DNA of 64,000 bases, taken from positions 124,001 to 188,000 of IMG/VR virus record IMGVR_UViG_3300021964_000012. One strand, given 5' to 3'. This document shows, in pieces, positions 1,417-58,446 of this stretch. Positions within the stretch are counted from its first letter, which is position 1. Every line of letters begins with the position of its first letter. Under the pieces are notes generated by a model, which saw nothing but the letters and a program-made list of their open reading frames with translations, ran no database searches and had not been told where the DNA came from. Made by a program: the position numbers and the translations under genes.

Positions 1417-3711
1417 CTATTCTTGTGTTTCATTGACAGTTACAATACCATTTGTGTCTATGTAAGCATCACTGGGTGAGCCTTTAGGTTTAACATCAAG
1501 TGTTATTCTTGGACGTTTGCCTTTGAACCATACATCAGCAGTTACATGAACATTTTCCAGTTTTTCAAAAAGTATCTTTTTACTTAACGGCACTTTGATA
1601 ATTTCGTCAATCTTTCTGCCCAATGGTCTTGCACCCATTTTAGGATCATATCCAACGTCAACAAGATATTCTACCATTGCTTCTGTTACAATAATATTAA
1701 TATTTTTTTGTTTTAGGTTTGCTCTGAGTTCGTTGATAAACTTTGCAACAATTTTTTTGATTGCAAATGGTTCTAGTGTTTTGAACTTGACTATCAGATC
1801 TAATCTGTTGCGTAGTTCTGGCTTGAAAAAATCTTTTACTGCTTTGTCTTCACTGCCAGTACGTACAAGTTCTTGACCAAATCCAATATTGTTGTTTTCG
1901 TTGTCTCTAGCACCAAGATTTGATGTTAGTATAATAATACAGTTTTTTACATCAACAGTTTTGCCATTTGATCCTGTGATCTTACCTTCGTCCATCATTT
2001 GTAGAAATATGTTTGCTACATCTGGATGGGCTTTTTCAATTTCATCAAACAGCAGGACACTGTAGGGATTTTTACTAACATCTGAAATTAGTTTACCACC
2101 GCTGAGTGTGCTATCATCATAGCCGACAAAACCTGGAGGTGCGCCAAGCAAGCTGCTAACTGTGTGTTTGTCTTGATATTCGCTCATGTCATAACGCAAC
2201 AGATGCATTTCTAAATTGTTGCTCAACAGTTTAGCAAATTCAGTTTTACCTGTACCAGTAGGACCAAGAAATAAAAATGCTCCCATTGGACGATTTGGCG
2301 TGCTTATACCTGCATAGTTTACATAGAGCCTTTCTAGCACTTCGTCTACTACATGATCTTGTCCAAAAAGTTTTTCTTTGATGTTGTTATCTAGATTTTG
2401 TACTTTTTCACTAGCATCGCTCGCCACTTTTGTTTCTGGAATGTTTGCAATTCTTGAAACCTGTTTGTCAATTAAATCTTCTGTAATTACCAAACCTTCT
2501 TGATCTTTAACACGTTCAGTTGCACATGCTCCATCTACTAGGTCTATGCTCTTGTCTGGATTTTTTTTGTCGTGCATGTATCTAGTTGCTAATTCAACTG
2601 CTTTTTCAATGGCGCCTTTGTCTATTGCGACATTGTGAAACTTTTCTAATCTAGGACGCAATCCTTCTAATATCTTTACGGTGGTTTCTTTGTCAGGTTC
2701 ATCTATGCTGACTTTGTAAAAGCGCCTCATCAATGCACGATCTTTTTCAAAACTCTCGTAAAATTCTTCCCAGGTTGTACTTGCAATAACTTTGAGATTG
2801 CCTTTGGTAATTGCAGGTTTGATCATGTTGGAAAAATCCAAACTGCTTCCACCTGTTGAACCAGCACCTTTCATGGTATGTGCTTCGTCTATAAAAAGTA
2901 TACAGTTCTTTTTTGATTCTAAAGCTGAAATAATATCTTTGAGTTTTTCTTCAAATTCGCCACGGTACTTAGAGCCAGCAAGTAGACTGCCTATTTCCAA
3001 ACCCCACACCTCAAAGTTTTTAAGGAACTTTGGTATTTTATTGTCTTTTATTCTAGTTGCCAAGCCTTCTGCAATAGCAGTTTTTCCAACACCTGGATCT
3101 CCTACCATTAATACATTACTTTTAAAACGTTTAGCTAATACTGTAACTATTTCTTCGAGTTCTGTTTCTCGACCAATAACTGGTTCAAGTTTATCGTCTT
3201 TGGCAAGTTTGCTCACATTTATGCAGTGCTCTTCGAGTATTTCATTTGCGGTTGAGATGTCAATTCCGTCTTTGGATTTACCATTATATGTTTGTTGCCA
3301 GTGCATTACAAATTCTTGTTTGACAAGTCCATGTTTCAGCATATAGTAGGCCGCATGACTGTTGGTTTCAGCCATGATTGCTAACCACAGATCAATGGTT
3401 TCCATACTTCGTCTACCACCAAACATAACCTGTGTTAATGCTCTGTTGAAAACTCTTTCAAGTGCATTTGTCTTTTTTGGGTCTCCTTTAACTGGATTGC
3501 TGACCAGCATGGTTTGTGAATCAATATATAATTGTAAATCTGACACAATAGCATCAGAACTGGAACCAAAAGACTCAATGCATCTTTTGAATTTTGGATA
3601 CTGCACCATTGCTAATGTAAGGTGTTCGATTGTCACATAATCGTGTTTCTTGTCTTTCGCAAGTTTATGAGCAGTTGCAAGTATTTGTTCTATTTCAGGA
3701 CTGTGTTGCAT
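1417..3711 (-). CDS. clpA: ClpA-type AAA+ unfoldase
   Basis: Clp N-domain, two Walker A motifs (GDPGVGKT, GPTGTGKT), GSKYRGEFEE pore loop, ClpP-docking IGF loop (NNIGFG), no ClpB M-domain. Confidence 0.92.
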   Translation of the reverse strand: MQHSPEIEQILATAHKLAKDKKHDYVTIEHLTLAMVQYPKFKRCIESFGSSSDAIVSDLQLYIDSQTMLVSNPVKGDPKKTNALERVFNRALTQVMFGGRRSMETIDLWLAIMAETNSHAAYYMLKHGLVKQEFVMHWQQTYNGKSKDGIDISTANEILEEHCINVSKLAKDDKLEPVIGRETELEEIVTVLAKRFKSNVLMVGDPGVGKTAIAEGLATRIKDNKIPKFLKNFEVWGLEIGSLLAGSKYRGEFEEKLKDIISALESKKNCILFIDEAHTMKGAGSTGGSSLDFSNMIKPAITKGNLKVIASTTWEEFYESFEKDRALMRRFYKVSIDEPDKETTVKILEGLRPRLEKFHNVAIDKGAIEKAVELATRYMHDKKNPDKSIDLVDGACATERVKDQEGLVITEDLIDKQVSRIANIPETKVASDASEKVQNLDNNIKEKLFGQDHVVDEVLERLYVNYAGISTPNRPMGAFLFLGPTGTGKTEFAKLLSNNLEMHLLRYDMSEYQDKHTVSSLLGAPPGFVGYDDSTLSGGKLISDVSKNPYSVLLFDEIEKAHPDVANIFLQMMDEGKITGSNGKTVDVKNCIIILTSNLGARDNENNNIGFGQELVRTGSEDKAVKDFFKPELRNRLDLIVKFKTLEPFAIKKIVAKFINELRANLKQKNINIIVTEAMVEYLVDVGYDPKMGARPLGRKIDEIIKVPLSKKILFEKLENVHVTADVWFKGKRPRITLDVKPKGSPSDAYIDTNGIVTVNETQE

Positions 3712-3732: not shown

Positions 3733-4527
3733 TTATTGACTGTGTTTCTTGATAGCACGAATTATTTCATCAGGAATCGATACAGGAATCTTTGTGTTTA
3801 TTTTTACAAATATATCTCCAGGATTGTGACCAATTCTCTTTACACCACAGGATGCAAGACGCATGACACTACCTGGATTGGTTCTAGGTGGGATATTTAA
3901 GTTAAAACTGCGTCCTATAATATCTGTAATTTTGATATTGCCTCCAACTACAAGTGTCCACAGGTTTACGTCTTGTTCACTATGCATATCGTTGCCATGA
4001 CGTTGCCAACGTGGATGTGGCTTCAAACGATAGTGTATAACCAAATCTAAACCACCTGGTCCAAGTTTTGGATAACGTATGTTTTCGCCATCAACAACTC
4101 CTGGAGGAACATCTACTTCGATGGTATTTTGTCCAGTCTGCATTTGTAGTGCAAGAGTTCTTTTTCCACCTTTCACTGCATCTTCTAAATCAATTGCCAT
4201 TGTTATTCTTGCATCTCTTGGACGCGGTGGTCGATTAGGATGCATACGTTGTCCAAAAATATTGAATATAGTATCAAAGTCAAAGGGTTGACCTTGTGTT
4301 TGAGAAAATCCAAATCCTTGTTTTTGTGGATCAGAGCTACCAGTTTGATCATAGTATGCACGTTTATTAGGGTCTTTGAGTATATCATACGCATTGCTTA
4401 TTTCTGCAAATTTGCTGGCATCTCCTCCTCGGTCAGGATGATGCTCTTTGGCTTTTTCTTTATAAGCTCGCTTGATTGTATCAGCAGTTGCACCTTTTGC
4501 AACGCCCAATATGGTATAAGGATTCAT
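3733..4527 (-). CDS. dnaJ: DnaJ-family co-chaperone (type II, CbpA-like)
   Basis: J-domain with HPD, G/F region, C-terminal domain (GDL/GDI motifs), no zinc finger. Confidence 0.9.
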   Translation of the reverse strand: MNPYTILGVAKGATADTIKRAYKEKAKEHHPDRGGDASKFAEISNAYDILKDPNKRAYYDQTGSSDPQKQGFGFSQTQGQPFDFDTIFNIFGQRMHPNRPPRPRDARITMAIDLEDAVKGGKRTLALQMQTGQNTIEVDVPPGVVDGENIRYPKLGPGGLDLVIHYRLKPHPRWQRHGNDMHSEQDVNLWTLVVGGNIKITDIIGRSFNLNIPPRTNPGSVMRLASCGVKRIGHNPGDIFVKINTKIPVSIPDEIIRAIKKHSQ

Positions 4528-4541
4528 AGTATATTGTATTA

Positions 4542-5716: not shown

Positions 5717-6377
5717 AGTTTTTTCCTTCTATTACATGGGTATTTATGTACTTTGCGGCCTCTAGATGTGCTTTTTCAAGTGGATGTCCGCCTGGTCCAA
5801 TAGGAAATTTTTTATGTTTTGCCCATTCTAAAAATGTATATCCGTAAAAATTTACAATATAATGGTTCACTTGTTTCTGTAAAGGTGTAACAAATTTTTC
5901 TTTTGAATACAACATCGGGTCCATACAAGTCATTATAAAGTCAATATTGTTTTGTTCCAGTAGGCAAATTGTACTATGTATTTGTTGTAGATTACGATGT
6001 AGATTCCATTTATCACTGTCTATGTGTTTGTAAAAATAATGGTTAAGTTTATCTTCGTGGCGTGGATGAGTAACTGCCCACCAACTGGTTTCTATATCAA
6101 TATAATCAAAACGTTCAAACCAACTCCAATTTATAATAAACAATGCATCTCTATATTTCTCAAGATACTTACATACACACATGCTTATCCAATGATTGCC
6201 ACGTCCGCCTATTGTCATGGAGTCATATTCGATGCCAAGTGTTTTTGCAACCAAGGCAGGCCAGGTGCTTAGACTGTGAGTATGATGTGATGCTATAGTA
6301 CACGATGTTGAGCAATCAGCCAGTTCGTCACCACGAGTGAAGCTGTCACCAAAAGCCAGTACTTTTTCATAAGGCAT
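5697..6377 (-). CDS. SGNH/GDSL-like hydrolase-fold protein
   Basis: AFGDSFTRG block I and C-terminal GHPL...H. Confidence 0.55.
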   Translation of the reverse strand: MPYEKVLAFGDSFTRGDELADCSTSCTIASHHTHSLSTWPALVAKTLGIEYDSMTIGGRGNHWISMCVCKYLEKYRDALFIINWSWFERFDYIDIETSWWAVTHPRHEDKLNHYFYKHIDSDKWNLHRNLQQIHSTICLLEQNNIDFIMTCMDPMLYSKEKFVTPLQKQVNHYIVNFYGYTFLEWAKHKKFPIGPGGHPLEKAHLEAAKYINTHVIEGKNYGHRQT

Positions 6378-7652: not shown

Positions 7653-8375
7653 ATGTCTCGAGCTAAACGAAAAGCAAAATATCAAAGACAACTTCAACAA
7701 GACAACACAATAAACTTCAACCAAGCACTAAAACGCAAGCACATAGAACTTCTTCCGAAGTCGCGTAATCAAGAACAACTTATCTTAAACCTATTAGATC
7801 CACACACGAGTATCACTGTGGCAACCGGACCTGCAGGCACGGGTAAGACTTATCTTGCAATGTTAGCGGCTATAAAAGCATTTAAAGATGGTGCGTGTGA
7901 ACGTATTGTATTGACTCGTCCAGCAGTAGGTGTTGATGATGAAAAGCATGGATTTTTGCCCGGTGACTTGAACAGTAAAATGGAGCCGTGGACAAGACCT
8001 TTGTTTGATGTACTTCGTGAATTCTATACCACAAAAGAAATAGCACGTATGCTAGAAGAACAAACTATTGAAATATCGCCATTGGCTTTTATGAGAGGAC
8101 GTACATTCAAGGATGCCTGGATTATAGCTGATGAAATGCAAAATGCAACGCCTAGTCAAATGAAAATGCTAATGACAAGAATAGGCAAAAATTCAAAAAT
8201 AGTAATCACAGGAGACGTTGAACAAACGGATAGAACCGTACACAATAACGGTTTAATTGATTTATGCAAAAGACTAGAAACTGCTCGCAGTGGACTAGCC
8301 GTTTGTTACATGAGCAATCAGGATATACAAAGACATCCTATTATTGACACAGTATTGGAGATCTACGCAACTTAA
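7653..8375 (+). CDS. phoH: PhoH-family ATPase
   Basis: GPAGTGKT, GFLPGDL..K, PLAFMRGRTF, DEMQN, GDVEQTD, RHP motifs; AGGAG RBS. Confidence 0.95.
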   Translation: MSRAKRKAKYQRQLQQDNTINFNQALKRKHIELLPKSRNQEQLILNLLDPHTSITVATGPAGTGKTYLAMLAAIKAFKDGACERIVLTRPAVGVDDEKHGFLPGDLNSKMEPWTRPLFDVLREFYTTKEIARMLEEQTIEISPLAFMRGRTFKDAWIIADEMQNATPSQMKMLMTRIGKNSKIVITGDVEQTDRTVHNNGLIDLCKRLETARSGLAVCYMSNQDIQRHPIIDTVLEIYAT

Positions 8376-8379
8376 AAAT

Positions 8380-8482
8380 TGGCTCTGGGAGAAGGATTCG
8401 AACCTCCAAGGTTAAATATATTGCAGTACATTCAACCATACGGTTAACAGCCGTACGTGTTTACCAATTTCACCATCCCAGA
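8380..8482 (-). tRNA. tRNA-Asn(GUU), atypical class-II body with 11-bp variable arm (103 nt, CCA encoded)
   Basis: TCTGGGA TG GTG AAATTGGTAAA CAC G TACGG CT-GTT-AA CCGTA T GGTTGAATGTA CTGCAA TATATTTAACC TT GGAGG TTCGAAT CCTTC TCCCAGA G CCA; all stems pair; U1-A72, G73. Confidence 0.9.
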
Positions 8483-8488
8483 GTATTC

Positions 8489-9319
8489 TTATACTTTGTT
8501 GATCTTTTCTAGTGCAGGAATCATACGTGTCACACCTATGCCTCCGCCTACTCTTTGAAAGAAGTCAAACTCTAAAAACTTTTCTAGTTCTGCTTCGACT
8601 CTTTCCTTGCCAAACAACTTGAATAGTAGTTTACTATAAGCACCATCTGTAATACTATGGAATGTATCACGCATCATATCAACATCACATGAACGTTCTG
8701 CTGATCCAATAGTTTCCATACCACCTAGTATAACGTCCATCTTCTTTGCAGTATTTCCGTCATCGTTTCTGGCCATGTTCCAAAAAGGTGATGTTAGTTC
8801 AGGGAAGTTTGTAATAAGTGTTTGGCCAAACTCTTCTTCCATCTTAAGTTCGTGTTCTGCTTCCATTTCTGTATCAGCACCTAGTCCAAAATGTTGTTGC
8901 CATTCAGCATAGGTCTTTTCTGTAATATTACCAAATCCTAAGTATTCACATAGTTCATACTCCATGGATTTTAAATCATCTACACTGCCTGGCATTTCAA
9001 ATTCAAACATTGGAAATATTATATCATGTCTGCCTGGTATTGCATTAGGCTCTTGTCTATAGGAAGTGGAGACACAAAAAAACCCCTTACTGTCGGGGCT
9101 ACTTAATAATTCATGTTCCAACCACATCTGGCCGGTTTGCGGTAGTGGCCATACTTGGCCTGCGTAATTGTATGTTGCTACGTTGAATGGATCTTCACAT
9201 GCGGCTAGTATGCTCAATCTGTTTTGTGTGTGTACTTCAAGAAAACCTTTTTCCAAAAAAAATGACCTTAAAAGGCCAACTGTGGAAGTGAATTTGCTTG
9301 GGTCTATTAGTTGCGTCAT
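8489..9319 (-). CDS. class IIb aminoacyl-tRNA synthetase catalytic-domain-only protein (AsnRS-like / archaeal-type asparagine synthetase-like)
   Basis: Motif 1 (RSFFLEKGFLEVHT), motif 2 (SYRQE...RH...FPMFEFE), motif 3 (GGGIGVTRM), ETIGSAER; no N-terminal OB-fold anticodon-binding domain. Confidence 0.85.
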   Translation of the reverse strand: MTQLIDPSKFTSTVGLLRSFFLEKGFLEVHTQNRLSILAACEDPFNVATYNYAGQVWPLPQTGQMWLEHELLSSPDSKGFFCVSTSYRQEPNAIPGRHDIIFPMFEFEMPGSVDDLKSMEYELCEYLGFGNITEKTYAEWQQHFGLGADTEMEAEHELKMEEEFGQTLITNFPELTSPFWNMARNDDGNTAKKMDVILGGMETIGSAERSCDVDMMRDTFHSITDGAYSKLLFKLFGKERVEAELEKFLEFDFFQRVGGGIGVTRMIPALEKINKV

Positions 9320-9395
9320 TGCTTTTCCTTTTTTTACCTAAAAAAAATTTGCCCAAAAAAAAATTGGACGTTACTTGTTCATCGAGTTATTTATA
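9320..9395 (-). promoter_or_regulatory. late promoter TATAAATA, leaderless Met-Asn-Lys minigene (9371-9382) and putative attenuator leader
   Basis: Minus strand: TATAAATA ACTCG ATG AAC AAG TAA C GTCCAA T9 GGGC AAA T8 AGGT A7 GGA AAAGCA ATG. Confidence 0.6.
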
Positions 9396-9487
9396 ATAGT
9401 TTGCCTTTTCCTGACAAATATTGTACAGTTGGTTGTGGCTTGAACCATCTTTGTAATATTTTTTCTAACCAATGCATATCTTACCTC

Positions 9488-9955
9488 CTAAAACTTACCT
9501 AAAAATCTTGCTATATGATGTACCCATGGCAACAACATTATAGCCATAAATGTGTTAGCACCAGTGTGTGCAAGTGCTATTCGAAGTGTATCGCCTTTGG
9601 GCATGCCATCGCTCACAAAAAAACCGGCTAACCAAATGGTGCCGGTAGTTCCAATGTTTGCGCCTAACACTGCCGCTATGGCTGCAGGCAGAGGCAGTGC
9701 CCCTGAGGCCACCAGTGCAATTATTGCCGTTGTACTTAAACTTGAACTTTGCCAAAGCAGTGTCATTACAATACCACCTAGAAACATATAGATTGGATTG
9801 CCTAAAAAGAAGTTTAAGTGTTCCAAGTTACCCATAGACTTCATACCACCTGAGAACATTTTCAGCCCTATATAAAATACTACCAGTCCAACAAGAGCCG
9901 TCATTATGGGATTGCCTAAGTCCATCCTACATACCTTTTTAATAAGTTTGTTCAT
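9488..9955 (-). CDS. Na+/phosphate cotransporter (NptA/SLC34-like), single repeat
   Basis: QSSS signature, GANIGTT motif, several TM helices. Confidence 0.8.
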   Translation of the reverse strand: MNKLIKKVCRMDLGNPIMTALVGLVVFYIGLKMFSGGMKSMGNLEHLNFFLGNPIYMFLGGIVMTLLWQSSSLSTTAIIALVASGALPLPAAIAAVLGANIGTTGTIWLAGFFVSDGMPKGDTLRIALAHTGANTFMAIMLLPWVHHIARFLGKF

Positions 9956-11270: not shown

Positions 11271-11451
11271 TGTTTGCCTCCTCTAAGATTTGTTTTCTTC
11301 CTTCGACACCGATCTGTGAATCCATCATGGTTTTTACATGTTGTAGCATTGCACACGCCATCATCAGTATATCTTCTCTGCTATCACACATCATAATCTG
11401 TTGTTCTATTGGCTTGCATAATTCTCGCATGCGAGCTTTTACATCAGTCAT
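11263..11451 (-). CDS. hypothetical protein
   Basis: 62-aa ORF with GAGGAG RBS. Confidence 0.55.
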   Translation of the reverse strand: MTDVKARMRELCKPIEQQIMMCDSREDILMMACAMLQHVKTMMDSQIGVEGRKQILEEANND

Positions 11452-11993
11452 TTTGTTATCTCCTCTTGTGTTATATGCAATTGACTTTTCATGTCATCTG
11501 TATTAAGGTACGCCAAGTTTATAATACTAGTAAAACCAATTACACGGGCTTCTGCTTGTTCGATCAAACGTTTGGTTGCCAACATACTGCCGCCAGTTGC
11601 AACCAAGTCATCTGCTATTAACACTCTATTAGCATGTCCTAACAGTCCTTCTTGTAGCACCAATGTATCTTCACCATACTCAAGTGCATAGGTTTCCTGC
11701 AACAAACTACCTGGATACTTGCTTCCTTTTTTACGCACCATAACAAAAGGCACTCCTATTGTAGCAGCCAACACTGCTCCTACTACAAATCCTCTGCTTT
11801 CAATACCCACTATGTGTGTGATATCACCGTTACGGTTGAATTGATCTTGAATTACAACTGCCATTTCGGCAGCAACTTGATTCCAAATTGGTTGTGCGAA
11901 CAAACTGTTTACATCATAAAAGTTTACACCTTCTACAGGATAATCCTGCACAGTTCGCATGTAATCTGTTGGTTTAGTTTTTACTGAAGACAT
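11448..11993 (-). CDS. apt: adenine phosphoribosyltransferase
   Basis: DYPVEGVNFYD, GIESRGF, VRKKG, YALEYG, PRPP loop LIADDLVATGGS; start moved to ATG at 11993 (GGAGG RBS). Confidence 0.9.
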   Translation of the reverse strand: MSSVKTKPTDYMRTVQDYPVEGVNFYDVNSLFAQPIWNQVAAEMAVVIQDQFNRNGDITHIVGIESRGFVVGAVLAATIGVPFVMVRKKGSKYPGSLLQETYALEYGEDTLVLQEGLLGHANRVLIADDLVATGGSMLATKRLIEQAEARVIGFTSIINLAYLNTDDMKSQLHITQEEITK

Positions 11994-13101
11994 AAACACC
12001 CTCCCATTTTTCTCTACCTTGTTTTCTATCATTGCCTACACCTGGACGTGTGTTAAGCATCATTTTAATTGTTTCTATGTGTTTGAATCCTAGTTTTTCT
12101 GCCGTCTCAATCCATCTTTGTGTAACTTCATAGGGTTCTTTTCTGTCGTAACTTTTATAGTCTGCAATGTTGGTAGCGAAAAGTCCTTCTCTATTGAGTC
12201 CTCTATGTATGTGTTCAATGGTTGGGACAACGTATCCGTCAAACCATTGATCTTCTGTTTTAAATTGTACCATACACTGGGTTTCTTCATCGCTATACTT
12301 TTCCAAGTTAAAATAAGGAGGACTACTAAATGCTAAATCTACATCCTCGGGTTGATATTCTTCGCTAACACTTTGTACTATGGTACTTCTTACGCCTGTT
12401 GCTTCATCAATGATATCATTTAGATAATTAAGATATTTTACAGTTTCAGTATTAGGTTCAACACCTATGTAATCATACTTAAAATTACTACTACCTATTC
12501 CTAAAAGTCTACCACCATAGCCGCAACTGTAATCATACACTCTGCCCCAAAGCACAGGACATAAATGTTCTGCTATTGCTTTAGCATTTTGTGCCTTAAA
12601 GTTAGTAACATTTTCGCCTGTAACTAGTTCAAGTGCAGTTCTTAATTGTGTGGGTCTTAGCAGTCGTTCACCAGTTCTAAATTCAAAACAGATACGTATA
12701 GCACGTTTAAGTTTACGTTCATCATAGAATCTATCTCGCAAACTATTTGAACCTCTACCTTTAGGTTCTGCAGTCATCATGTTAGGAAACAAAAATCGGT
12801 TAATGGTTTGTCCTCGATTGTTTCCAAGTCCAATCTTGCCTTGTTCTACATTGTTATACGATAGTTTGCTGAATTTACGAACTGCTTCTACCAGTCCCTT
12901 GTGTGTAAAATACACAATAGGAACAAGATCAATTGAACGATATATGTCATATACACTTTCGATAGTGCCTTCAGGATCTTGATCATATTGTGCTTTGTCA
13001 AACGCATCAAGTTGGTTATAAACACTTTCATAACCAGTGAACTCATCACTTTCAATTTGTGATGGATCAATATTCCATATTTGATATAAATCTTGAATCA
13101 T
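11974..13101 (-). CDS. amino (N6A/N4C) DNA methyltransferase
   Basis: SAM motif YDYSCGYGGRL and catalytic SPPYF. Confidence 0.8.
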   Translation of the reverse strand: MIQDLYQIWNIDPSQIESDEFTGYESVYNQLDAFDKAQYDQDPEGTIESVYDIYRSIDLVPIVYFTHKGLVEAVRKFSKLSYNNVEQGKIGLGNNRGQTINRFLFPNMMTAEPKGRGSNSLRDRFYDERKLKRAIRICFEFRTGERLLRPTQLRTALELVTGENVTNFKAQNAKAIAEHLCPVLWGRVYDYSCGYGGRLLGIGSSNFKYDYIGVEPNTETVKYLNYLNDIIDEATGVRSTIVQSVSEEYQPEDVDLAFSSPPYFNLEKYSDEETQCMVQFKTEDQWFDGYVVPTIEHIHRGLNREGLFATNIADYKSYDRKEPYEVTQRWIETAEKLGFKHIETIKMMLNTRPGVGNDRKQGREKWEGVYVFSKN

Positions 13102-14084: not shown

Positions 14085-15008
14085 TCATCCATTGATCTGC
14101 GAAAGCTCCACCATTGTTGCACTTAGATTAATTTCTGGATCTGCTACAAAACTGTGATTAACAAGTCCTGTACGTATTGCCATTATGGCACTGTCTTGTC
14201 CTTCTGGAGTTGTACTAAACAATTCCAAGTTATCATACATCCAGCGAAACACATCTTCCATCTCTTCTGGACGTACAGTTGCACACATTAATTTTCTTGC
14301 TTCTACTATTTTTCCTGCCTTAAACAAGTTAACTGCATCAACACGCCAGTCGCTGATGTTTCCTTCATCGCCTTTGACATTTGCAAGTCGACCATTTGTA
14401 CTGTTCATTTGACACAAGTTCAAACACTTACGCAGATCAGGATAGGTGCTACGTACATAAGTGTCTAGTATATCAATGTCTATTTCAACATGTTCTGCAA
14501 CCAATACAGTTGCAACTCTCGCTGTAAATTCTGTTCGGTCTACTTTCTCAATATGAAAACCTTGACACCTTGAATGTAATGCAGGAATAACTCTGTTTGG
14601 ATAGTTGCAAGTCAGTATAAATCTTGCACTTGCATGATAGGTTTCCATAACGCCACGTAGTGCCGCTTGTCCGTTTGGCGATATATAGTCAGCCTCATCT
14701 AATAACACAATCTTAAAGTCGCCAAACGGCATAGTTTGTACAAATCCTGTAATCTTGTCACGGATTGTGTCAATTGAATTCTCTCTTGATGCATTTATTT
14801 CTAGTACATCAAAGTCATCTATTTCAAGTTGTTTGATCAGTATCTTTGCCAGTGTTGTTTTACCTACACCAGGTGCACCACTGAATAACAAATGAGGAAT
14901 AGCACCTTCATCTATCCAAGTTTTAACCTGTGCTTTTTGTTCGTCATCACGGAACACATATCCGTCAATGTCATTTGGCCTATACTTTTCAGTCCACAGT
15001 TGCTTCAT
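14085..15008 (-). CDS. sliding-clamp loader subunit (RFC small / T4 gp44-like)
   Basis: WTEKYRP, GAPGVGKT, EINAS, DEAD, SRC motifs. Confidence 0.93.
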   Translation of the reverse strand: MKQLWTEKYRPNDIDGYVFRDDEQKAQVKTWIDEGAIPHLLFSGAPGVGKTTLAKILIKQLEIDDFDVLEINASRENSIDTIRDKITGFVQTMPFGDFKIVLLDEADYISPNGQAALRGVMETYHASARFILTCNYPNRVIPALHSRCQGFHIEKVDRTEFTARVATVLVAEHVEIDIDILDTYVRSTYPDLRKCLNLCQMNSTNGRLANVKGDEGNISDWRVDAVNLFKAGKIVEARKLMCATVRPEEMEDVFRWMYDNLELFSTTPEGQDSAIMAIRTGLVNHSFVADPEINLSATMVELSQING

Positions 15009-15030: not shown

Positions 15031-15059
15031 ATTATATTATGATTAGCGAGGTAAGTCAA
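15031..15059 (-). promoter_or_regulatory. sigma70-type promoter for the clamp loader
   Basis: TTGACT-17-TATAAT, then AGGAG RBS. Confidence 0.7.
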
Positions 15060-16734
15060 CCAGTTCTGGAAAAACATCTAATAGTTTTACATTGTAGATT
15101 TTATCTCTTTGTTCAATCTCTTTCCAAAATAGTTTAGGATTAAACGTTTCGTTATTGTCCATGGCATGTATAATTGCCATATAACCAGTTGTACTTTTTC
15201 CATAAGGATCAAGTGGGCGTAACCATTCTACATGTTTTTGAAATTTTTCTCGGATTAGATCTTTGAGATACTCAGGAGCAGTTGTAACACGCAGATATTG
15301 CTTGTTGGTTAGTAGGTTCACAATCCATTGGTCAGCATCTATTAATCCTTGCTCTACCCAATTTCGATGAAAGTCTGGCATATGTAATGCGTTCAGAATT
15401 GTAATTGTTGATTGAACATTAAAGAATATATCTGGGCGTTTTTGTTTAATTTGTTTGGTAAAATCGACAATCTTGTCCCAGGTGTATGATCCAGGGCGTA
15501 AATATAACGCACGATCGTATTCAGCATCAAGACTTGCAAATACAATAATATTTTTAAAGTTTTGCCACAACTTAAAAATATCTCTTGAACCTAATCCAGA
15601 ATAAGTCATGTTTGTAATATACATTAGTTTTATATCGTGTCTTTTTTTCTCATCTAGTTTTTCAACAAAATCATATGTTTCTTTCATCATTAAAGGCTCA
15701 CCACCTTCGAATATGATCTGATTAAAATGATCTATATGTTTAAAATATTGTTCTAGTAAATCTGGATTACTTGCTACAAAGGCTTTATCAGGAACAGTCA
15801 TTCCTAGTAACTTTTCCACACTGTAAAGACTACTCGAAAACTTAGTCTGACACATTCTACATTGCAGATTACATAAATTGTTTGGTTTATAGTTCAGTAA
15901 CTTTATTTCAAATTTTTCAAGACTTCCATCATTATTTGTGCTTAAAACACTTGGAAATTCTTGTATGAAGTCTCTATTATAGGCCGTTCTTGCAGTATCA
16001 CCTTTATATTTTTGATCTTTTAAATAGCAAGTTTTACAAGCCTCTAGTTCTTTGCCTTCAAGCATATCAAGTCTAAGTTGGCGTGTATTTTTATTGTTCC
16101 ATATATCTTCAAGAGTTTCGTTGTTTGCATTTCCTAAAGCGGTGTCTGTAGATATGTAACAACAAGGGTTCACCTTATTATCTTGTGTGACATACTGACT
16201 TATCCACGGTAAAACACAAAATGTTTTACTTTCTAAAAATAGGTGCCTTGCTCTATCTGGCAAATTCTCTAAGAGAACACTGTTATTTCCTAGCCCACTA
16301 AAAGTTTGATAGATTGAAATATCTTTATATGTATTTGTATAATCACCTGAAGCTTTGTATAAATTGATTAGCACAGGGTCAACACTTGTGTTTTTATGAA
16401 CCCAAAGATATTCTTCTTCTAAATTAGGATTAGTTGAAATAATAATTGTAAAAAAATTACTAATATCAAGTTCGTTTAACATTGTCTGCACACTTTGTAG
16501 TACAGTGTTAGATTGTAATTCTTTATAAAAATCTTTTGTTATTGTCAATACAATGCGATGGTGTTCTTGATATGTAGTTTTGTAATTTTTTTTTAATTGA
16601 TTATAAAGCTCGAATAGATTATTTTCGTATAAGTCACAATCAATTACATCAAGAACTGTGTATGTTTCTTTTAGTTCATTTATCCATTGTTCTATTGTTG
16701 GGAGATTACTACCTTTGGTAAATGTCAATGGCAT
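15043..16734 (-). CDS. radical SAM protein with SPASM/twitch-like domain
   Basis: CNLQCRMC, GGEP, FCVLPW..PCC, CKTC. Confidence 0.85.
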   Translation of the reverse strand: MPLTFTKGSNLPTIEQWINELKETYTVLDVIDCDLYENNLFELYNQLKKNYKTTYQEHHRIVLTITKDFYKELQSNTVLQSVQTMLNELDISNFFTIIISTNPNLEEEYLWVHKNTSVDPVLINLYKASGDYTNTYKDISIYQTFSGLGNNSVLLENLPDRARHLFLESKTFCVLPWISQYVTQDNKVNPCCYISTDTALGNANNETLEDIWNNKNTRQLRLDMLEGKELEACKTCYLKDQKYKGDTARTAYNRDFIQEFPSVLSTNNDGSLEKFEIKLLNYKPNNLCNLQCRMCQTKFSSSLYSVEKLLGMTVPDKAFVASNPDLLEQYFKHIDHFNQIIFEGGEPLMMKETYDFVEKLDEKKRHDIKLMYITNMTYSGLGSRDIFKLWQNFKNIIVFASLDAEYDRALYLRPGSYTWDKIVDFTKQIKQKRPDIFFNVQSTITILNALHMPDFHRNWVEQGLIDADQWIVNLLTNKQYLRVTTAPEYLKDLIREKFQKHVEWLRPLDPYGKSTTGYMAIIHAMDNNETFNPKLFWKEIEQRDKIYNVKLLDVFPELVDLPR

Positions 16735-35761: not shown

Positions 35762-37315
35762 ATGCGAATATTAGTACTAGGAAATAACACAAAAGATACT
35801 GACGATCAAGTCAAAGAGCTTGCAGAGAAGGCTGGTACATATAATCACGGGCTCGTTGAAACAACAGATCAAGATTTCTCACAACACGGATATTACCACA
35901 CCACATTAATAGATTTATCACCTGGTGAAATAATGAAATTTGTACACCAGTTTGATGAAGTGATGGTGTTAGATCAACCAGCAAGGAGTTGGGATAGTCA
36001 AAAGCCAAGACTTAGCACCTATAAGTTGATCACTTCCCTAGAAAGACAGAGCAATAGACTAGGTCTTAAAGTTAGCGGTACTGATAATGACAGTTTTGTT
36101 GATATGAAGTATTGGACAGATTTGTTCAAATCAAATCGAAGTTTTTGTGCTTATCCATGGATAGTACATAGTCAAGACAAGGTTGATGCTAATAAATTAA
36201 ATCTTTGTGCTCGAAGTTCGCACGAAGTCACTTCATTAAAAGATCTTGGCAACTGGCAAACAAATCCTGCCTTTACAAAAATTAGAGAAAAAATGAAACG
36301 TGGCGAAAAACTTCCAGGCACATGTCGTGTATGTTACAAATACGAAGATCGTGGATTAACAGGATATAGAACACACGACAGCCTAGACTGGATTGCACGT
36401 TTAGGACTAAAAAATATTAAAGATTTTGACAAGATAGATAGTCCGTATTATTATGAGCTTAGACTTAGTAACCGATGCAACCTAATGTGTCGAATGTGTA
36501 CACCTCAACACAGTCATCTACTAAAGCAGGAGTTTGAAGAAAATCCTGGTTTGGTCAATAGTGGCCAGATGGACGATCCAACCCAAAGTTGGACAGATAC
36601 CGGTGTAGTTGACATAGAAAAATTAACATCTAAACATAAAGTTTACCTAACCGGCGGTGAGCCAATTATTATGCATGAAGTCTATGCATTCATGCGACAA
36701 TGCATAGACTTAAGAAAAACTGATTTTCTTTTTACCCTTGGAACAAATGCTCAACGATTAAATCCATTGTTCTTAAATCTTGCTAGTAAATTTAGCAATA
36801 TGCACTTCAGTGTAAGTATTGATGGTTATGGAAAAGTAAATGATTATATAAGATGGAAAAGTGATTTTGATACCATAATTAAAAATTGTCATATTCTAAT
36901 CAATCAAGGACACCAAATAACATGGAATCATGTTCCAACCATATGGGGAGTACATCGAACACACGAATTGTTTGAATACGTCAGCGAACATTTTCCTAAG
37001 GTTCCTCTCTATTTACAATACAATCGTGTTGAAATTACCAGTGCATTTAAAAGTCCGCTCATTGAGGAGACAATCGAAAGCATGGAACGATGTAAAAAAA
37101 CAATATTGTACACTAGTGACGGCAAAGACTGTACCAGTGGAATTGATGCTTTTTATGATCACTATAGTAGATATAAAGTTAACAAAGATGATTTAAAAAA
37201 GTTTTTTACATGGAATGATTTAATGGACAAAGCCAGAAATATATCAATGGCAGATTATATCCCAGAGCTAGACAGATGCAGAACAATGCTAGAGGTGAAC
37301 CAGAATGCAATTTGA
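35762..37315 (+). CDS. radical SAM protein with SPASM/twitch-like domain
   Basis: CNLMCRMC, GGEP, FCAYPW, CRVC, SIDG. Confidence 0.85.
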   Translation: MRILVLGNNTKDTDDQVKELAEKAGTYNHGLVETTDQDFSQHGYYHTTLIDLSPGEIMKFVHQFDEVMVLDQPARSWDSQKPRLSTYKLITSLERQSNRLGLKVSGTDNDSFVDMKYWTDLFKSNRSFCAYPWIVHSQDKVDANKLNLCARSSHEVTSLKDLGNWQTNPAFTKIREKMKRGEKLPGTCRVCYKYEDRGLTGYRTHDSLDWIARLGLKNIKDFDKIDSPYYYELRLSNRCNLMCRMCTPQHSHLLKQEFEENPGLVNSGQMDDPTQSWTDTGVVDIEKLTSKHKVYLTGGEPIIMHEVYAFMRQCIDLRKTDFLFTLGTNAQRLNPLFLNLASKFSNMHFSVSIDGYGKVNDYIRWKSDFDTIIKNCHILINQGHQITWNHVPTIWGVHRTHELFEYVSEHFPKVPLYLQYNRVEITSAFKSPLIEETIESMERCKKTILYTSDGKDCTSGIDAFYDHYSRYKVNKDDLKKFFTWNDLMDKARNISMADYIPELDRCRTMLEVNQNAI

Positions 37316-57429: not shown

Positions 57430-58446
57430 CTATTCAACATAGTTATTATAAAATTCATGACTGGCAAGATTCTTACACTTGCTTTCGCACTGTATATCCC
57501 AGTTATCTGCAAAGGTGGCTGCCCATTCGTTAACTGCGTGATTCCAATAGAAGTCACTATGGGCACGTAGTTTTTGTTTCTTGTAGCCTTGCTCAAGTAA
57601 TGTGGTCATATCAGGGCGAGTATTAGGATCATGGTCAACTAATATGTCTTCTCTAGATACACTGTAGTGCAATGCTGGACGTACTCCACGCCATGAATCA
57701 ATTATGCGAGAACATCTATCGTCGGTGGTGTTAATATACTCGCCTGAAGCGACCCAGTGATGGTGTATGTCAAGCACAAGTGCAACGTCTTTGGCAAGTT
57801 CAAGCGAGGCTTCAAGCCCCCATTTGTTTTCGTCGTTTTCAATTGTGATAGTATTTCTCGCCTCCGGAGATAGTCTTGGGAGGATTGCTTTAATACCGGC
57901 TGGACCTTGTCTACCGGATATATGGACGTTGCATTTAAAGTCTTGAAATTTGCGGCCGTAGCCCATCCATCGGATAATGTCAACATGATATTCAAACTCC
58001 TCTATACTGCGTTCTACTATGTCTGGATTGTCACTGGCAAGCACTGTAAACTGTCCAGGATGAAAACTAAGACGTACTCCTAGTTCTCTTGCTAACTCAC
58101 CTACACGAGCATATCCTACTGCTAGTTCATCACGTATATCTGGTTGTTGCCAAAAGTAACGCCAGTCTGGTTGTGTATACATAGGCAACTGATTACTGCC
58201 AATACGACACATACGTAAGCCAGGCTTGAGATTACCTACATATTCGACAAGATTGTATGCACTTTGCATATTGTGCGTCATGATATCATACAGTCTTTGT
58301 TCTGCTTCATTAACAGTCTGTCTATTAAGCCATGCAACTGTTGTACACTTTTCTGTAAGTGGACGTTGAATTTCTTCTAGTAGTTTAGGTTTCTGTGTTT
58401 GATCTGGATGTAGATATTTGCAACAAAAGCCGACACGTGCAGTCAT
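57430..58446 (-). CDS. uvsE: UV-damage endonuclease
   Basis: RLSFHPGQFTVLAS, NVHISG, IENDE, LDIHHH, HYS, AHSD, ESK.K. Confidence 0.9.
   Translation of the reverse strand: MTARVGFCCKYLHPDQTQKPKLLEEIQRPLTEKCTTVAWLNRQTVNEAEQRLYDIMTHNMQSAYNLVEYVGNLKPGLRMCRIGSNQLPMYTQPDWRYFWQQPDIRDELAVGYARVGELARELGVRLSFHPGQFTVLASDNPDIVERSIEEFEYHVDIIRWMGYGRKFQDFKCNVHISGRQGPAGIKAILPRLSPEARNTITIENDENKWGLEASLELAKDVALVLDIHHHWVASGEYINTTDDRCSRIIDSWRGVRPALHYSVSREDILVDHDPNTRPDMTTLLEQGYKKQKLRAHSDFYWNHAVNEWAATFADNWDIQCESKCKNLASHEFYNNYVE

Follow-up and report, generated by a model that had tools for sequence, protein, structure and literature searches.

The stretch of DNA analysed here (the window) comprises 64,000 nucleotides, positions 124,001 to 188,000 of IMG/VR virus record IMGVR_UViG_3300021964_000012, and carries on its minus strand a compact cassette in which a synthetase-like gene is followed at once by an unusually shaped asparagine tRNA. 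Listed in ascending coordinates, that is, against the direction of transcription, its features are the following:

8380..8482, minus strand: a 103-nt tRNA with a GUU anticodon, U1-A72, G73, an encoded CCA (the gene ends in GCCA), a 3-bp D stem and an 11-bp extra arm capped by CUGCAA, on a leucine-tRNA-like body; this copy has A37.
8489..9319, minus strand: a 276-aa class IIb (Asp/Asn/Lys-type) synthetase catalytic core with no anticodon-binding domain, belonging to a distinct family that also occurs in bacteria and giant viruses.
9322..9330, minus strand: an A-rich ribosome-binding site (AAGGAAAAG) 2 nt upstream of the ATG; AAAGGAAAA is conserved in the cassette leaders.
9340..9369, minus strand: a conserved leader element, namely a 6-bp hairpin (GTCCAA/TTGGGC with a U-rich loop, 9369-9351) followed by AAA and U8 (9350-9340), which looks like an intrinsic terminator.
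9371..9382, minus strand: a Met-Asn-Lys-stop minigene (ATG AAC AAG TAA), present here but not conserved, and probably a chance ORF in the A-rich start of the leader.
9388..9395, minus strand: a TATAAATA box resembling a T4 late promoter; an (A/G/T)ATAAATA box sits at this position in most cassettes.

A preliminary description made from the sequence alone had placed the box, the minigene, the enzyme and, 6 nt after its stop, the tRNA at these positions, and we find all four exactly there, so that the observation itself stands. It had read them as a self-regulated asparagine module in which a private synthetase/tRNA pair, or an Asn-supply unit, is switched on when Asn-tRNA runs short, the extra arm replacing anticodon recognition; as detailed below, this interpretation is only partly supported, since the enzyme and the tRNA do form a conserved unit in phages, whereas the Asn-codon minigene is not supported and the private-synthetase reading is weakened.

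The tRNA is missed by ARAGORN, which finds none in the window, yet the Rfam tRNA model (RF00005) scores 56 bits against a threshold of 29 at 8383-8482 on the minus strand, with a 29-nt insertion in the variable region, and the minimum-energy fold is a five-armed cloverleaf with an 11-bp extra arm (z = -3.4). Across 44 distinct copies the acceptor, D, anticodon and T stems are 100% paired and 17 pairs show compensatory changes, a result reached by 0 of 500 shuffles. In 91 distinct copies U1-A72 and G34-U35-U36 are invariant, G73 being invariant in the 44 aligned copies, whereas position 37 is U in 67 copies, C in 6 and A in 18, that is, a pyrimidine in 80% of them. The variable region is 12-39 nt long and forms either a short arm capped by a GNRA-type loop or a 10-11-bp arm capped by C(U)GCAA; the short variable loop and purine 37 of an ordinary bacterial tRNA-Asn are therefore not features of this group, even though the window's own copy has A37. 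The 3-bp D stem with its GAAAUUGGUAGAC-type D arm and the extra arm often capped by GCAA match bacterial tRNA-Leu, and two patescibacterial tRNA-Leu genes are the best non-family hits of the covariance model (60 and 56 bits, against 42 or less for other tRNAs); the molecule departs from tRNA-Leu in its GUU anticodon, in G73 instead of A73, in U1-A72 instead of G1-C72, in an extra arm that reaches 11 bp and in a position 37 that is mostly U. It is thus a leucine-type class II body that carries the asparagine identity set, for GUU plus G73 is sufficient for bacterial Asn identity and U1-A72 is the GatCAB determinant (PMC9976931).

Whether relatives of the enzyme co-occur with such tRNAs and with an upstream Asn-codon minigene had been proposed in advance as the test of the module, and the two halves of that test gave opposite answers. 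IMG/VR holds at least 597 contigs that encode relatives, and the protein database more than 8000 clusters. Of the 81 phage loci with enough downstream DNA, 80 carry a GTT tRNA after the gene, in 78 of them starting 4-10 nt after the stop; conversely, when IMG/VR was scanned with a pattern taken from the tRNA, 116 of 117 assessable hits had the enzyme gene just upstream, the one exception being a degenerate 5' fragment inside a tRNA cluster. The pairing extends across T4-like cyanophages and a PA5oct-like jumbo phage. In the nearest isolated relatives, Prochlorococcus phages P-SSM2, P-SSM5 and P-SSM7, a 'tRNA ligase' (T4-GC 194, about 67% protein identity) is already annotated directly before an 85-88-nt tRNA-Asn(GTT), which is the only tRNA reported for P-SSM2; those copies have a short extra arm, no encoded CCA and no hairpin leader, and the gene is listed in one table of Sullivan et al. 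2010 without analysis (PMC3037559).

The leader, in contrast, offers no evidence for Asn sensing. An ATG is present in only some leaders, many having none at that place while others encode Met-Thr, Met-Lys-Lys or Met-Glu-Lys, and an Asn codon appears only in the window's closest relatives and in one further locus, L058 (loci are numbered with the prefix L). A T-box or riboswitch was likewise ruled out, as no Rfam cis-regulatory hit lies above threshold at 8200-9600 and the leader is only about 70 nt long. What is conserved is the ATAAATA box, the hairpin and the U-run: in 24 leaders the U-run is invariant and 4 of 5 stem pairs show compensatory change, although the fold alone is not significant. 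TATAAATA occurs only twice in the window against about 7 expected, and neither the box nor the four-codon minigene, which is not conserved, exceeds chance on its own; conservation of the box in the cassettes together with its lack of recurrence in the window does not allow it to be assigned either way as a T4-type late promoter, and the cassette seems to bring its own signal.

The enzyme matches only Pfam tRNA-synt_2 (PF00152), the class II Asp/Lys/Asn core (E 4.5e-16, residues 14-271), with no second Pfam domain, and falls far below every NCBIfam synthetase cut-off (TIGR00457, asnS, 36.5 bits against 342.6; NF003037, 35.8 against 414). The AlphaFold (AF2) model is confident (pLDDT 96) and superposes best on AsnRS and AspRS catalytic domains, which fill the top Foldseek hits (TM 0.75-0.79; 0.76-0.79 to T. 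thermophilus and P. horikoshii AsnRS), archaeal AS-AR not being among the 50 listed. Profile alignment to E. coli AsnRS reaches 96.7% probability (E 4e-10) over AsnRS residues 141-455, the 276-aa protein beginning at the catalytic core and lacking the N-terminal OB-fold anticodon-binding domain. The class IIb core is present, with motifs 2 and 3 intact and the motif-1 proline replaced, and the pocket is AsnRS-like: Leu-Glu after QxxQ where AspRS has Lys-Gln, Glu in FEFE and Arg in SAER. Charging of tRNA-Asn was not assayed. A family profile hits AsnRS at 1e-15 but archaeal AS-AR (3p8t) at only 1.7e-7 over a partial stretch, and the protein is not a sequence member of the AS-AR or the AsnA family; there is no Pfam AsnA hit at E up to 1, NCBIfam asparagine synthetase A (NF005055) scores 18.4 bits against a cut-off of 389, and alignment to E. 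coli AsnA has 3.7% probability (E 0.011). Two local motifs, Cys-Glu and GGGIGxS/TRL (motif 3), nevertheless resemble E. coli AsnA, with the same motif-2 loop length.

A search of 1.84 billion cluster representatives finds only 688 relatives, mostly 260-300 aa long. Outside phages, members occur in giant-virus bins and in a pithovirus, and a scan of GTDB genomes finds 414 loci, including complete patescibacterial chromosomes, Bacteroidota (Moheibacter, Aureispira, Chitinophagales), Midichloriaceae and other Alphaproteobacteria, which are 55-61% identical to the window protein (53-61% for the homologues in bacteria and giant viruses) and which PGAP names 'amino acid--tRNA ligase-related protein'; searches for the sequences numbered P0228 and P0194 in viral contigs gave nothing. 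None of these cellular or giant-virus loci has a tRNA-Asn-like gene nearby, the only genome-collection loci with the tRNA being six marine bin contigs that fall in or beside the phage clade. On the protein tree the tRNA-bearing genes form essentially one clade, within which short and long extra arms interchange at least nine times without matching protein changes, which makes recognition of the distal extra arm by the protein unlikely. Nor do the phage proteins show an extra basic surface or an added RNA-binding domain; they are more acidic than the tRNA-less ones (median net charge -19.5 against -12). Phage and cellular proteins share about 100 residues conserved at 90-95% or more, including all active-site motifs, and only five minor clade-specific positions separate them, so that a neofunctionalised phage enzyme was rejected and both groups should catalyse the same reaction.

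The gene context of the family (hereafter X) outside phages points to pyrimidine synthesis. Two family members are fusions: P0124, PyrD followed by the family domain, is found on seven contigs beside an OMP-decarboxylase gene, and P0136, the family domain followed by OMP decarboxylase (PyrF), lies beside PyrE and PyrD. Of 88 genome and giant-virus loci, 17 have PyrD, PyrE or PyrF within 2 kb, and these cover several lineages: Chitinophagales and Aureispira have a genuine class 1A PyrD just upstream (483 bits, cut-off 301); Midichloriaceae have X, then a short PyrD-like gene, then PyrE; the alphaproteobacterial loci L107 and L170, which fall in the same large clade as the phage group, have X-PyrF; and giant-virus locus L090 has PyrD. 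Only about a fifth of cellular loci show such neighbours, however, the others lying next to PEPCK, DnaX or Dus. Phage-type loci that carry the tRNA also have a short (229-233 aa) DHO_dh-like gene near X (L094, L109, L221, L235, L238, L239 and L247), whereas canonical PyrD/E/F queries found no pyr genes in the window or in most phage flanks, and PyrD was not found in P-SSM2 or P-SSM7.

Some of these observations may be explained by assuming that the locus is a mobile two-gene cassette of marine phages, transcribed from its own ATAAATA-type promoter through a hairpin/U-run leader, whose first gene is a synthetase paralogue that has lost its anticodon-binding domain and, like AsnA, HisZ or EpmA, most likely works in metabolism rather than in tRNA charging. 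In this view the enzyme adenylates a carboxyl group of an aspartate derivative at or just before the dihydroorotate step of UMP synthesis, the most probable reaction being ATP-driven, irreversible ring closure of N-carbamoyl-L-aspartate to dihydroorotate, that is, AsnA-type adenylation of the beta-carboxyl followed by attack of the ureido nitrogen as an internal nucleophile; the product would feed PyrD, PyrE and PyrF of the host, or of the phage where a PyrD-like gene is present, and so raise pyrimidine supply. The family behaves like other synthetase paralogues that moved into metabolism: it travels with the three enzymes that act after dihydroorotate and keeps an ATP site and a pocket for an Asp/Asn-like ligand, and AsnA and archaeal AS-AR, synthetase cores that adenylate the aspartate beta-carboxyl, provide the precedent. 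The tRNA, presumably cut out of the same transcript, carries everything that host AsnRS, or non-discriminating AspRS with GatCAB, needs for charging, and may simply be a co-transcribed asparagine tRNA that arose from a tRNA-Leu gene.

We hold this reading tentatively, with a probability of roughly 0.4. Our data demonstrate the anatomy of the cassette, the linkage, the covariation, the pyrimidine gene context and the shared conserved residues, whereas the reaction, the processing of the tRNA and the identity of the enzyme that charges it are inferred. Dihydroorotate formation was not assayed, and carrier genomes were not scanned for pyrC, asnS or gatCAB. The AsnRS-like pocket, in a family far closer to AsnRS than to AsnA or AS-AR, fits alpha-carboxyl activation of Asn equally well, and a purely metabolic enzyme accounts neither for the near-obligate reciprocal linkage to one peculiar tRNA nor for its retained class II body and the pyrimidine at position 37; why the two stay together is unexplained.

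The private pair, taken without the minigene, is possible but doubtful. Here the core would activate asparagine and load it on the cassette's own tRNA, recognising the acceptor end (U1-A72, G73) and perhaps the base of the extra arm, while the class II body keeps host class IIb enzymes away. The reciprocal linkage, the AsnRS-like pocket, the structural hits, a class II body otherwise unknown for tRNA-Asn and covariation of the first two extra-arm pairs all speak in its favour; against it stand the orthologues that share the conserved residues yet live without such a tRNA in pyrimidine operons and fusions, the acidity of the phage proteins, the arm-length changes and the retention in the tRNA of the full set read by ordinary host enzymes. 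Moreover, class IIb enzymes normally depend on the anticodon, without which the enzyme could not easily tell this tRNA from tRNA-Gln, which also has U1-A72 and G73. No protein-RNA complex was modelled.

An asparagine-supply cassette is equally doubtful. The enzyme would be a third lineage of synthetase-derived, ammonia-dependent asparagine synthetase, alongside AsnA and AS-AR, with the tRNA adding decoding capacity for AAY-rich phage genes and host AsnRS charging it. The precedent of AS-AR, the wide distribution of the family without a partner tRNA (giant viruses included), the local AsnA-like motifs and the 6.2% of Asn codons in the window's ORFs are consistent with this, and the architecture, a stand-alone core of about 280-330 aa as in those enzymes, fits; yet the gene context points to dihydroorotate and UMP synthesis and not to asparagine, the PyrD and PyrF fusions and PyrD/PyrE/PyrF neighbourhoods go unexplained, and with asparagine formation unmeasured the architecture does not settle the matter. 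Midichloriaceae belong, moreover, to the Rickettsiales, which lack AsnRS, so that free Asn would be of little use to them, although this point was not tested here.

A tRNA-dependent metabolic or RNA-modifying role, whereby the enzyme acts on the resident tRNA-Asn in cells and on the cassette one in phages, either to anchor or modify an Asp/Asn-derived intermediate on the way to a dihydropyrimidine ring or to aminoacylate a tRNA nucleoside as GluQRS does, is the least likely, for although some phage loci combine a PyrD-like gene, X and the tRNA, X sits beside a tRNA dihydrouridine synthase in 8 patescibacterial loci, the GUU anticodon is invariant while positions 32, 37 and 38 vary as if it were read by a protein rather than tuned for decoding, and Glu-tRNA in haem synthesis, GatCAB and GluQRS offer precedents, there is no direct evidence, the product keeps a free alpha-carboxyl, which argues against a tRNA ester intermediate, the Dus neighbourhood may be a single inherited arrangement and no such pathway is known. 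That enzyme and tRNA truly work together, be it as a minimal, anticodon-blind AsnRS with its own class II-shaped tRNA or in such a tRNA-dependent step, is unlikely overall but not excluded.

The cassette is abundant, hundreds of marine phages carrying it, and has borne the label 'tRNA ligase' since 2005, but in the literature searched we found no paper on the family and no description of the hybrid tRNA, which finders such as ARAGORN miss or mislabel. Recruitment of synthetase cores lacking anticodon domains to metabolism (HisZ, with a phosphoribosyltransferase), protein modification (EpmA/PoxA) or tRNA modification (GluQRS) is established; those paralogues derive from different parent synthetases, and none is coupled to a dedicated tRNA gene or fused to pyrimidine enzymes. 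Should X provide an ATP-driven route to dihydroorotate, it would be a new enzyme in a textbook pathway and a new kind of viral nucleotide-supply gene; should it instead charge the tRNA, it would be a compact natural orthogonal pair. Finally, a cyanophage origin of the window is not supported, since megablast found no near match and its clamp loader is closest to that of Pseudomonas jumbo phage PA5oct (55%).

While the cassette recurs in cyanophages, the window's clamp-loader protein is closest (55%) to that of Pseudomonas jumbo phage PA5oct and then to that of Agrobacterium phage Atu_ph07, not to cyanophages, and megablast of the first 25 kb finds no close relative. Since the identical enzyme occurs on a 328-kb contig, the window probably comes from an uncultured marine jumbo phage. 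The same stretch encodes an adenine phosphoribosyltransferase (NF002636, 158 bits, above its cut-off) 2 kb from the cassette, i.e. another nucleotide-salvage gene, together with further cargo. The positions are as follows:

1417-3711 (-), 15043-16734 (-), 35762-37315 (+) and 57430-58446 (-), other cargo: a 764-aa ATP-dependent protease-like AAA protein, two large radical-SAM-domain proteins and a UvdE UV-endonuclease
11448-12032 (-), adenine phosphoribosyltransferase
14085-15008 (-), clamp-loader protein

For the long-arm tRNA (8380-8482, minus strand) and its relatives in loci L004-L083, automatic annotation of these phages will be wrong: ARAGORN either misses the long-arm tRNA altogether or, by shifting the anticodon, mislabels relatives as tRNA-Glu(ctc), Asp(atc), Gly(acc), Asn(att) or a stop-decoding tRNA (anticodon tta). 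In the P-SSM2 record (AY939844.2, locus L002) the tRNA-Asn feature lies about 2 kb away from where the tRNA really is (annotated at 5789-5874, against 3777-3864 by ARAGORN, in locus coordinates), the coordinates apparently not having been updated with the sequence version; in P-SSM7 (locus L001) a "hypothetical protein" CDS (PSSM7_126) is annotated at 2732-2854 on top of the tRNA-Ile and tRNA-Arg genes and is probably spurious; and protein P0026, which is 96% identical to the window enzyme, is named "transposase [bacterium]" in NCBI nr, which looks like a misannotation. A 5' fragment of the cassette tRNA, comprising the acceptor, the D arm and the start of the anticodon arm, sits without the enzyme inside a cluster of other tRNA genes in locus L282 (about 2554-2600), and looks like a decayed copy.

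With regard to the protein-coding neighbors, a short (229-264 aa), very divergent DHO_dh-like protein family recurs next to the enzyme in Midichloriaceae and in phage contigs (loci L094 at 1249-1938, L109 at 3837-4538, L171 at 2836-3630, and L221, L235, L238, L239 and L247), its members being 37-41% identical to one another. The Pfam DHO_dh score passes the gathering cut-off of 27 bits in L094 and L171 (46 and 42.9 bits, respectively) but not in L109 (23.5 bits), and it has not been established whether this family represents a real dihydroorotate dehydrogenase. Among the nearest neighbors of the enzyme gene, two cellular loci, which were not individually identified, have a large Amidase-family gene (best E 2.5e-151), possibly GatA. 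In Patescibacteria, a tRNA-Gln(UUG) gene lies 0.1-2.7 kb downstream of the enzyme gene (loci L100, L101, L112, L133, L136, L157, L159 and L164). In L164 the order is tRNA-dihydrouridine synthase (DusB-like), enzyme, DnaX and tRNA-Gln, and both Dus and DnaX also recur as nearest neighbors in the wider set (8 and 11 loci, respectively); tRNA-Gln, for its part, shares U1-A72 and G73 with the phage tRNA.
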